This document shows positions 40,014 through 64,000 of a stretch of 64,000 nt of DNA, one piece after another (position 1 is the stretch's first letter; each line of letters starts with the position of its first letter). The position numbers and the translations under genes were made by a program. The notes below the pieces were generated by a model that was not told the DNA's origin, made no database searches, and saw only the letters and a list, made by a program, of their open reading frames with translations. The stretch lies in NCBI GenBank assembly GCA_964106915.2, contig OZ066915.1; one strand, written 5' to 3'. This DNA comes from Podarcis gaigeae. Its lineage: Eukaryota.

Positions 40014-40202
40014 TTAGGAGGAAGTGCTAGGATCCTGGGCACTGACAGGTTTGGGGGTTGGACTTTTTACTTTGCCCTTAGCAGCTTCAAGCTGCTTGCC
40101 ATGGATGCGGTTGATGAAGGAGAAATAATCATCCATGGGTGCAATGGGAACGACTGATATATCCGAAGCGGCACCTTCTGGTAAAGCCAAGTCCTTGCTC
40201 TC
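40014..40202 (-). CDS. PCP2: Probable PCP2 terminal exon with degenerate GoLoco ([21 protein letters not shown])
   Basis: ACTGAC branch point + ttttctctttgcttcaacag acceptor, phase 0, 62 codons + TAA; ATTAAA at 39660-39655. Confidence 0.7.
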   Translation of the reverse strand, partial: ESKDLALPEGAASDISVVPIAPMDDYFSFINRIHGKQLEAAKGKVKSPTPKPVSAQDPSTSS

Positions 40203-43200
40203 CTGTTGAAGCAAAGAGAAAAGTCAGTTTCATCCCAGATTCTTCTTTCATGTCTTCATTCGGCATCTAATCTCATCCATGACCCTGATGATAGCCTAAG
40301 ACTAGCCTGCATGAACATAGATTATACCTTCCTGTACATTCAAATCCCGACCGCAGCAGCTTTGTGCAGTAAACAACCTCGAGTTCCCCATCAGAACCAC
40401 CATTATCACCATCCACCCTTTTCTGTCACTCGTATAGTCCACATTACTATGCCAACAGCTCCGAGCACAGGGTAGAATCTCAAGGTCTTCTGTCCTCCTA
40501 AGGGCAGGCAACTCTGGTCTATTAAGTCACATCAGTTCCAAACCGTCTGGAAAAGATGCGTCAGTTGTGAAAGGGACACATCTATTGAAAGACGTTTTGG
40601 GCACCCTGGTGGTTATCACCAATTTAAGCTTCGTTACTCAAACCGCTCGGTATAAAAAGGGGACGTGGCCTACATATAGAGATTACTGAGAGATTAAGAA
40701 GGAAAATAGAAATTAAAAGATTATGAGGAAATTAAAGACCATTTTCAGAGTTGGCTGCATTACAGACAAATACATGAGATGTACAAGGAAGATAATAAGA
40801 AAGGGTTTAGCTATACAAGTTATAGAAGAAGTAAAGCTGCTGAAGAAAGCATATAGTATTCTGCTAGAATGGGCAACAAAAGATGAAGAGGTCAAATCAG
40901 TTATGATCAAATGGGCACAAGATACAGGACACAATATATAGTTCGAGGACTGGGAAAAGCTGCGGAAGGTAGATTTGAAATTTACTGACTGTTCTCTGCT
41001 GAAAGAAAACTATATGAAAATGATGTATAGATGGTATATTACACCAGTACAAATAGCAAACATGTATAAAACAGGACCAAATATATGTTGGAAATGTAAA
41101 GAAAAAGAAGGTACTTTCTATCATATGTGGTGGGAATGTAGAGAAGTTAAATTTTTTGGGGAAATGATATATAATGAATTGAAAAAAATGTTTAAAATGA
41201 CATTTGTAAAAAAAACAGAAGCATTTTTGTTAGGGATTGTAGGACAAGACCTGCCAAGAAAAATAAAAAAATATTTATGTATGCTACAACAGCGGCAAGA
41301 GTTTTGCTAGCACAAAGATGGAAGAATGAGGAAATCCCAACAAAAGAACAGTGGCAAGAAAAATTGATGAGCTATGCTGAACTGGCCAAGCTGACATATA
41401 AACTGCGTGACAAGGACAACCATGACTTCAAGGAAGAATGGGAACTTTTCATAAATTACTTAAAAAGACAACAAAAAGATTTGGACTCCTTGGCAGGTTT
41501 TGAATAAACATCCACAAATTTATTTGTTGAATATATGATAGATAAGGCAATGGTATGTACAATTTTACAATATGCAGAGGATAATATGTGTAAAAAAACC
41601 AGAGACAGGAACTGAGGGGAGTCCTTGGGGGGGGAGGGGATAAACAACGGGGGGAAATGTAAATGGATATATTGATTGATAAGTTGGTTTTGTGTGTGTG
41701 TGTGTGTGTGTGTGTGTGTATGTGTATGTATATGTATATGTTTTGGGGATTCAAGTTTAGGTGAGATGGATGACAACATTTGTTATTACACGGAAAGCAG
41801 AAGATAAAAACTTAGCCTGTACTTTTAAGTACTATTTCCTTAGCTAGGTTCCTTACCAGTGTTGCTCAGTTTCCACAGGCCTTCATTTCCTGCATCCCTC
41901 CCTCTCAGAGTCCACACATAAACGCAGATTACAAATTTCATTTCTTCCTCTGCCCAAGTGCTGCTCTTTCAACCACACATACAGCATACATGAGCACACA
42001 CAACCTATTCAGAAAAGACTCCATGGGTAAAGTGCTTGCCATTCCTCCAACCTGCCAAATCCAATTTTTCACAACCCAAAATGCAACAGGACCACCCAAC
42101 TGGCTCTTGCGGACACTGTGGTGGCCCTGGGCACCAGGTTGGCAATCCCTGCCGTATGGGTACAGTGTTGTTGATGAAAGGTTTCAGTGTGCCTCTGGCC
42201 AGATCTGTATATCCTTCAAGTTTCAAGGGTCTGGAACAATTTGTGTTTCAGGGAAGAATGGCCTGAGGGGATCAGCCACAAGGTTGCTTTAAAGATTTAA
42301 TGATGTGCACTCTTTCAGTTTTAAAGGAGTTATAGTTTGCAAATACGGAGTCTGATACTGAAGTAGGATGCTTAGGCGTTAGCACAGTGTGAAGAAGGAA
42401 GATGAATTATGGTGCAGCCAAAGAACTTAGAAGCACTGTGGTTCTTATTACTGCTGTCAGCCAGTATCTTGTCTACTGTCCAGGGAATCAAGGTGTCGTA
42501 CACTTCAGAGGCAGATCTGGATGAGTTGCTACACATTCTCATCCCAACCTCAAATTGCCTGGCTGTAGTGGTAGAATTTGCCCTTTTCCGGTAATAATGA
42601 CCTCTTCATTTCTGTGCCATGGGAGTGTGGAGATCAGCACTTTCAAATATGCTCTGGGTGATTTGCAAAACCCTTTTTCCCCAGTGCAAAGCTAACTTTG
42701 GATCAGATAGCTTATGGCAGACATCTATATACATGCTTTATTTTATTTTTTAAAAAAACAAATATTGCAGAACGTAAGATGGCAAAGCAGCAGTGTACGT
42801 GTTGAATCGCTTCACAAGAACGAGATCCGCATTGATCTCTGAATAGATGCATCCGCTCTTGGAATGGAGATAGAAGACGTACAAGGAAGCCAATGTGCGT
42901 TTGTGTTTCAATCAGTGATTCTGTTGCCAACTTAATTTGCTGATGTTTGTGTGCTTCCAGAGTGCGTTTTAAAAAGAGGAGGAATGGCTGGCTCTGGATA
43001 GCTGCTGAAGGCAGTCTGCACTCACTTTCTTCAGTCTCACTCTGTTAATCATTGGCTGACAGCTGCTTATCCTGTTACAGAAGGTGGAATTATGTTACTC
43101 TGCAGTATCAGTGTACCCATGGGTAGATCTCATTGATGTGCGTGATTTGACCTGGGCATGGTGTACATGGAATTTTGAATCCGGATCAGAATGTGGCCAT

Positions 43201-62220: not shown

Positions 62221-63856
62221 CAGAACTACAGCAGCAAGCACCCCCTCGCCGGCTCAGTGCCACCCTCTCCCCCGCACAGCCTCACTCTCTCCACACAGGA
62301 GATCAAAATCCATATTTTAATAAACACAGGCGTCCAATCTGCTCCCTCCATCGGATCCCCGTAATCTGCATAAAGATTATCCTGGATAATTGTCTCAAAA
62401 GAGCCAACACACACTTTGTTAGTGAGTGTGTGTGTGCTTATGTGTTCCCATGTGTGCACATGCACATGTGTTGCACCACAAGGAAACTGAGGAAAGCACA
62501 TGCCTTTCCTTCTCGCCACTACATTTGTTTTGATCTGGCATCATCCAGGCTGCTAGCACAGTCCTTGTTTCCCTTGCCCTAATCAAGCCATGATCCGACT
62601 TCTCGTGATGTCCACTTTCAAATCAGATGTACTACACCTCTGACATGATACGACACTACTCATTTCGGGGCCTGGTAGCTGAGTCAGCTACAGGCCTTAG
62701 TCCTTGGCCAGCCACTGTGAATTCTGGCTCAAGCTGACACACAGCCCTCTGGGGTGATGTGGGAGGTAAGACTTGGCCCAGTCAAGAATGCACTGCTACA
62801 CATATGTGTGAACACCCTTCCTAGAGATATAAAAGGCCTACACTAATAAATGCTTGGCACAATAGTGACAGGAAGAAAGTCACTGGCCTGTACTAAGTAG
62901 GTAGCAATAAAGTGAATTAATCTCTAATTTGTTACTTCATTAACAGTTATCTGAGCATGGAATTTCCTTTCTTATGCTCTTAGCTCACTCATATATTTAG
63001 CCCCCCACATTACAAATGAGGAAATTATTCTGACAGTGTTCTGCCACACCCCTATAGAAGTAAAAGGGTAATAGGAAACAGCCAATGTTCTCTTAGGTAA
63101 GCAGGATCTTTCGATCCTGTCTTTATACTTTCCCTTCTCATAGTGGGACACGGGGATAAAATTGAACCAGGTAGTGGATTTGGTGAGCCCTTATTTCTGG
63201 CCCATGGAATAAAAGCTGAAATATATGAGTTGTGGCCAAGAAGCTTGTGTTCTGGATGTGCTTGCTGCGTGAAGCATATAAGTGTTTAAATTGTGGGAAG
63301 CCCTTTCTTGTGTAGAAGTTAAACTTGGAAGGTTGATGGTAGATGGGGATTGTCTGCAGCAGCTGTAAGGTTCTTAAGGGAAAAGGTAGGCTTTCATAGC
63401 AAAGAAGTATATGGGGGAAAGGGCTGGGAAAGTTATTAGTCATGAACTATTTACAGATGAGGGCTGGTGGAGAAAGCAGGTACACAGGCCGGCCCAGTCC
63501 ACTGAGCCTAAATACATCTGCAGTATGAGGAAGAGCAGCTGAGTGTCAAAGGTTGACCTGGTCCAGCTGGTGCAGTTGGCCAGCTGTTGAGTTCAACAGG
63601 TGGCAAGTGGATCTTTTGAAACACAGGGATGCCAAGGGATTTGTACAGCTTTGCAAGAGCAACTGTGGCCCTAACTTCTGCCTCCAGATTAAAGCAGAGC
63701 CATATTGTTACTCTAGGCAACTTGCCCAGCAAATGTTGGCAGCAGGGTCCGGAATAGGGTGCACAGGACTAGTAAGGTGAGTAGAAATTGACAAACAGGG
63801 TAGCCTGATGAAGGACAGAGGAGAGGCTTGGGGGACGGGTCATGTCACTCACTCAC

Positions 63857-64000
63857 TGAATGAGGCATCTTGGTATTCTTGGTGCTGGTGTAGCGGGTGC
63901 TGGCATCATAGTCACCAAGAAAGGCACTAGGCAAGGCTTGGTACTGGCGCCCAGGCATGGACAGAGCCCTGAGAGAGCACAGGAAGAACTTCCGTGGACG
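63857..64000 (-). CDS. Candidate upstream exon of the PCP2/GPSM-like gene, cut by the window edge (RPRKFFLCSLRALSMPGRQYQALPSAFLGDYDASTRYTSTKNTKMPHS)
   Basis: 48 open codons ending at a consensus gtgagt donor in phase 0; loose similarity to the GPSM1/2 linker. Confidence 0.55.

Follow-up and report, generated by a model that had tools for sequence, protein, structure and literature searches.

A minus-strand gene at one end of a 64,000-nucleotide (nt) stretch of Podarcis gaigeae DNA (contig OZ066915.1, assembly GCA_964106915.2; the window) is almost certainly the lacertid orthologue of PCP2, also called L7 or GPSM4: a small GoLoco protein without tetratricopeptide repeats (TPRs), and not a third adaptor of the LGN type. 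A first-pass annotation made from the sequence alone had read its exons as the end of a full TPR–linker–GoLoco gene resembling GPSM2 (LGN) and GPSM1 (AGS3), of which mammalian PCP2 would be a truncated remnant. The gene and its isoforms are already known as PCP2 in RefSeq; what remains is an evolutionary point. With the attractive adaptor claim removed, the locus has little significance as a lizard gene, and its value lies in exon phases that reveal the origin of PCP2 and date its TPR loss.

Identity of the window gene

The gene contributes a chain of four exons to the window, which is free of N:

64000-63857, minus strand: edge exon, 144 nt in the window, open to the window edge, phase-0 donor
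54039-53916, minus strand: GoLoco1 exon, 124 nt, phase 0-1, D/E-Q-R triad intact
52047-51884, minus strand: GoLoco2 exon, 164 nt, phase 1-0, triad intact
40202-40014, minus strand: distal last exon, 189 nt, 62 codons, ends in a stop; ATTAAA at 39660

All four have canonical AG/GT ends and the positions and phases first assigned to them, and joined in frame, as had been claimed, they give 206 codons with no internal stop. The joined chain served for this frame check alone, and every search took single exons or database proteins as queries. With the Pfam cut-off at 25.1 bits, GoLoco motifs scored 40.7 and 44 bits in the two middle exons, while the edge and distal last exons gave no GoLoco match. 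The GoLoco exon translations are identical to Podarcis PCP2 models, each of the four exons has close homologues in other reptiles, and reptile RefSeq PCP2 models contain every exon described here for the window gene.

The same chain exists as annotated isoforms elsewhere among reptiles. Hemicordylus X1 and X2 (221–222 amino acids, aa), Pogona X1 and X2 and softshell turtle X1 consist of these four exons behind a short start. The chain is therefore genuine in reptiles and has been annotated before, and the flanking exons belong to the gene as proposed. The edge exon as sole query brought up PCP2 isoforms from squamates. The original list of four exons stands as far as it goes; it missed an ATG-bearing start exon and two alternative last exons.

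Close protein relatives are small and TPR-less. Among 1.84 billion representative proteins of any length, every relative above 60% identity to the GoLoco2 exon was 56–214 aa long. The ones whose names were checked, from turtles, squamates, crocodilians, salamanders, monotremes and a marsupial, are called Purkinje cell protein 2. A search aimed at TPR-bearing PCP2 among 232–737-aa proteins with PCP2-type words found none; it returned PCP2s of 231–363 aa, two long TPR-less fish proteins and, at E ~1e-7, distant TPR-bearing Pins-type proteins. Coelacanth, newt, frog and teleost orthologues also lack TPRs. The platypus and echidna PCP2 models (335–421 aa) place the linker-like exon after a long Pro/Arg/Gly-rich N terminus and are TPR-less.

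The locus also occupies the position of PCP2. CAMSAP, XAB2 and PET100 lie beside the window gene and STXBP2 lies upstream in relatives, the gene set named for the PCP2 neighbourhood of mammals and reptiles (PMC4467842). Besides this position, the gene shares with PCP2 two intact GoLocos on 0-1 and 1-0 exons, a small product without TPRs, a place in one clade with mammalian PCP2, and alternative first and last exons; mouse PCP2 likewise has alternative exons, 1B and 3B (PMC3939015). It differs from the mouse and human genes in extent, spanning at least 24 kb against about 2 kb (PMC6792250), and from mammalian PCP2 in keeping a last exon with an eroded GoLoco4, to which mammals show no similarity (z <1). 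The linker-like exon kept in the lizard gene occurs also in newt, turtle, monotremes and wombat.

The region upstream of the window

Four related reptile loci and the corresponding gap in eel stood in for the region past position 64000. The reptile loci come from a skink, a monitor, a turtle and a sister lacertid whose sequence (L006) is 93.6% identical to the window. STXBP2, expected beyond the window, does end 9–11 kb upstream of PCP2 on the same strand in the three squamates (9.3 kb in the lacertid, 10.5 kb in the skink, 11.2 kb in the monitor). In the turtle, no gene was called within 10 kb upstream.

These gaps gave no sign of TPR coding. tBLASTn with 13–15 GPSM/Pins N-terminal regions reached best E values of 0.11–0.98 on the coding strand of the upstream gaps, and a TPR profile peaked at 3.1 bits over five of them (lacertid, skink, monitor, 11 kb of turtle, 3.9 kb of eel). 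The milkfish GPSM2 locus, our positive control, was detected at E down to 1e-43 and 66–151 bits per exon, and passed even with tunicate and midge queries. The skink gap holds a single 10-nt run of N, too small to conceal an exon array. Searching the sister-lacertid gap with residues 1–425 of 15 GPSM proteins recovered nothing resembling the RRHSM Dlg phospho-site, and the exon in the position of the RRHSM exon encodes MSAQ only. Conserved blocks between STXBP2 and PCP2 were considered as coding and rejected; with indels and no TPR signal, they read as non-coding. One such block, L006:3512-3727 (L002:6852-7067, L003:3678-4059), is 87% identical between lacertid and skink and ~80% in the monitor; rich in TAAT/ATTA sites, it is a possible enhancer.

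The gene's upstream start appears to lie just beyond the window edge. In the sister lacertid, the edge exon measures 177 nt (phase 0-0) and is preceded by a 277-nt intron and an exon ending in MSAQ codons. A 160-aa protein of that species (P0328) starts with MSAQ and exactly matches the window translations of the edge, GoLoco1 and GoLoco2 exons. By homology, the edge-exon acceptor of the window gene should lie 33 nt outside the window, with the MSAQ start exon about 0.3 kb above it, making the edge exon coding exon 2. The end of this micro-exon is conserved in sister lacertid, skink, monitor and turtle, and in-frame stops fall within ~20 codons upstream of its ATG in the latter three. Position 63969, within the edge exon, was considered as its acceptor and discarded, since in relatives the exon extends 33 nt past the window edge position. 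The N termini of the skink, monitor and one Podarcis model differ from one another and look like prediction artefacts. The Podarcis one, exon 1 of a Podarcis muralis PCP2 model, corresponds to window segment 58862-58785 (minus strand); models of other species do not share it, and it is probably such an artefact.

That lizards keep a full TPR–linker–GoLoco paralogue here, with only mammals using a short internal form, is on this evidence barely credible. In its favour, exon order and phases fit the C-terminal half of GPSM2, the edge exon equals the GPSM2 linker exon in length (177 nt) and phase, and in the lacertid the MSAQ exon has an acceptor, with the reading frame open upstream. Against this, the check toward STXBP2 that the first-pass annotation had called for, run on the four relatives' loci and in eel, found no TPR exons in the squamate, turtle or eel gaps, in a setting where insect and tunicate TPRs easily detect fish GPSM2. 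A conserved start also sits four codons before the edge exon, behind in-frame stops in three species, and the TPR-less orthologues of coelacanth, newt, frog and teleosts speak against it too. With the TPR half absent upstream in four related reptile loci, the third AGS3/LGN-like adaptor falls away. In the wombat, a PCP2 model that includes an edge-exon homologue begins 540 bp from an inverted STXBP2, so the edge exon is not peculiar to lizards and does not point to a longer gene. STXBP2 and PCP2 stand in tandem in eel and squamates and head-to-head in wombat, a difference that suggests an inversion on the mammalian line.

Correspondence with GPSM2 and the age of the TPR loss

PCP2, the gene we recognize in the window, matches the C-terminal half of GPSM2 in exon structure. 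In milkfish, the GPSM2 gene closes with four exons: the linker exon (177 nt, phase 0-0), the GoLoco1 exon (0-1), an exon (1-0) that encodes GoLoco2 together with half of GoLoco3, and the last exon (primate GPSM2 matches were excluded from all comparisons). In reptile PCP2 the last four coding exons follow the same order with the same intron phases, and the first of them has the same length (177 nt). The likeness to GPSM2/LGN and GPSM1/AGS3 extends to the sequence type of GoLoco1 and GoLoco2 and to the distal last exon, whose alignment with GPSM last exons is in register from codon 1 onward (z 3.6–9.4 against shuffles, seven tetrapods).

What PCP2 lacks is equally clear. Unlike GPSM2 and GPSM1, it has no TPR repeats, RRHSM Dlg-binding site, GoLoco3 or GoLoco4 triad, leaving two Pfam GoLoco matches where four intact motifs would be expected of an LGN-type protein. 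The GoLoco2 exon is shorter than its GPSM2 and eel counterparts, which also encode the first half of GoLoco3, and a search of introns 54040-63856 and 40203-51883 for a GoLoco3 or TPR exon found neither. Within the distal last exon GoLoco4 is eroded: the D/E-Q-R triad is lost and the helix half kept (40140-40090, minus strand; D-Y-F-S-x-I-x-R-x-H, with a fixed histidine). This half-GoLoco persists in teleosts, amphibians, turtles, crocodilians and lizards and is absent from mammalian PCP2.

The proposed parallel between the flanking exons and the LGN linker and last exons holds for order, phase and last-exon sequence, and is weak for linker sequence. The edge exon could instead be unrelated and newly recruited to GoLoco exons from a GPSM-like gene, so that PCP2 would not be a GPSM ohnologue throughout, a possibility we regard as unlikely while giving it real weight. 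Profile–profile comparison (hhalign) scored the edge exon against the GPSM2 linker no better than shuffles (82/200), pairwise z ranged from -0.1 to 3.8, and fish and coelacanth proteins showed no such exon. Yet its position, 0-0 phase and 59-codon length are those of GPSM2; the GPSM1 and GPSM2 linkers, true homologues, score about as weakly against each other (z 1.4–3.6); and the last exon does match GPSM last exons. The edge exon thus probably descends from the GPSM linker exon, a conclusion resting mainly on position, phase and length.

AGS3-short is a TPR-less product of GPSM1. PCP2 resembles it as a GoLoco-only product of a GPSM-type gene made through an internal start, and differs in that AGS3-short is an isoform of a gene still holding TPR exons, of which PCP2 has none in the species examined. 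The first-pass view of mammalian PCP2 as a truncated GPSM-type paralogue survives, borne out by matching exon order and phases; its restriction of the truncation to mammals does not, given that the coelacanth, amphibian and teleost proteins are TPR-less.

Teleosts carry what is probably a multiplied version of the gene. In eel, the one fish in which synteny with STXBP2 was checked, the gene just downstream of STXBP2 (L004:10001-21750) encodes a 712-aa protein with GoLoco matches and no TPR. Its exons are tandem copies of a three-exon, three-GoLoco unit with introns placed as in GPSM2, also at the split within GoLoco3, and the half-GoLoco follows in the DNA. Cod, mormyrid, surfperch, smelt and damselfish have similar poly-GoLoco proteins of ~8–14 motifs, which databases list as uncharacterized or under wrong names (SRRM2, mucin-2, unc-89). 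A 94-column tree groups the lizard protein with mammalian, amphibian and coelacanth PCP2 and with these teleost proteins (support 98/87), and the teleost gene is a probable PCP2 orthologue. If so, it would offer fish a candidate Purkinje and bipolar cell marker and a natural high-valency Gαi binder.

Because coelacanth, amphibians and teleosts all lack TPRs, the simplest reading is a single TPR loss before the split of ray-finned fish and tetrapods, not on the mammalian line. PCP2 probably arose in the vertebrate genome duplications, since GPSM1, GPSM2 and PCP2 all have an STXBP gene nearby. An ancestral GPSM1/2-type gene would have shed its TPR exons before that split, leaving PCP2 as the remaining C-terminal half; tetrapods would then have lost GoLoco3, and mammals additionally the GoLoco4 remnant, if we have the order right. 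We hold an even opinion on a fuller scheme, in which the truncated half took three routes (multiplication to ~8–14 motifs in teleosts; two GoLocos with linker exon and half-GoLoco helix in non-mammalian tetrapods; loss of the helix in mammals) and the triad-less half-GoLoco has a binding role of its own. A literature search, with most subscription journals outside its reach, found no paper on PCP2 evolution or on such a three-way split.

Several points weigh against the reading of the gene as a TPR-less PCP2 with this ancestry. The 94-column tree leaves PCP2 unplaced among GPSM1/2, and alternative positions for the fish proteins are unrejected (p-AU 0.12–0.13). PCP2 sampling did not include sharks, gar or lampreys. 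Past 64000 the window genome is represented by its nearest substitute, the 93.6% identical lacertid. Lacertids have no stop in the frame ahead of MSAQ, and certain models there include 27–37 extra, unconserved residues that differ between species. Among the read runs examined, none displayed the joints 63857-54039 or 51884-40202 in Podarcis gaigeae.

Alternative starts, alternative ends and neighbours

PCP2 in the window has further exons that would diversify both termini:

62068/62053-61925, minus strand: alternative first coding exon, ATG at 62053, 43 codons beginning MTTVEAK, phase-0 donor at 61925
62456-62214, minus strand: promoter block upstream of the MTTVE exon, TATAAAT starting at 62220
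50052-50011, minus strand: 14 codons, minor alternative last coding exon with the same sequence as the end of a Zootoca RefSeq isoform
48566-48360, minus strand: proximal last exon, one lysine codon and a stop, AATAAA at 48417

The MTTVE start exon is older than the MSAQ start exon. MTTVE begins coelacanth (130 aa) and newt PCP2, and teleost proteins have MTSVE. Its promoter block is 84% identical to turtle over 149 nt and 77–82% identical to skink and monitor over 550–650 nt. An AG at 62069 could also let the exon splice in as a 144-nt internal exon. One read run, of unstated tissue and RNA by our guess, holds two of the exons and shows no depth in introns, repeats excepted. A 620-nt contig from it covers 61925-62246, breaks exactly at the MTTVE donor and continues for 299 letters, which fit the two GoLoco exons (288 nt) plus 11 by length only; a weaker contig covers 63936-64000 and continues 154 letters past the window edge.

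The proximal last exon terminates 160-aa lacertid models and is 77–78% identical in skink and monitor. Lacertids might always end the gene there, at 48566, leaving exon 40202-40014 unused and the long chain unmade: all ten lacertid database models inspected (10/10) end at the proximal or another near exon. We judge this improbable, since the distal exon is intact with acceptor and stop, is 97% identical in the sister lacertid and 75% identical in Hemicordylus, and is spliced in RefSeq models of the latter as in Pogona, turtle, newt and frog.

We propose two starts, MSAQ followed by the 177-nt exon and MTTVE with a TATA promoter to itself, which would feed the two shared GoLoco exons and then at least three alternative last exons. 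The resulting TPR-less proteins would be ~140–220 aa long (predicted products range from 140 aa to ~221 aa). Such alternative use of exons is like that of Ret-PCP2, which the papers citing it present as a retinal splice variant (PMC3939015, PMC11269129). By analogy with mouse PCP2, which binds Gαi and acts as a guanine nucleotide dissociation inhibitor (PMC3939015), the two intact-triad GoLocos most likely bind Gi/o α-GDP and slow nucleotide exchange. Mouse PCP2 expression is limited to Purkinje and bipolar cells, and orthology suggests that the lizard protein probably acts in Purkinje and retinal bipolar cells; alternative starts and ends probably tune its location or strength by cell type. 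NuMA and Insc binding by LGN and AGS3 depend on TPRs (PMC12151148), and GPSM proteins carry a Dlg phospho-site (PMC8576264); lacking TPRs, RRHSM and the GoLoco4 triad, PCP2 would be incapable of NuMA, Insc or Dlg binding of that type and of the autoinhibition those papers describe.

Three neighbouring genes mark the synteny:

36473..38767, plus strand: PET100, synteny marker, end approximate
23469..32095, minus strand: XAB2/SYF1 exons, Pfam HAT_Syf1, full extent unmapped
10900..17571, plus strand: CAMSAP exons, Pfam CAMSAP_CC1 and CKK, CAMSAP3 by position

The introns hold other features. Open reading frames at 40975-41310 and 43742-44438 in the last intron are, by their look, presumably decayed pieces of retrotransposon reverse transcriptase. 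High-copy repeats lie at 59400-59600 and 60940-61060, where DNA runs reach very high depth. Two blocks on the minus strand, 60322-60141 and 49579-49284, show no coding signal and are 76–81% identical in skink and monitor.

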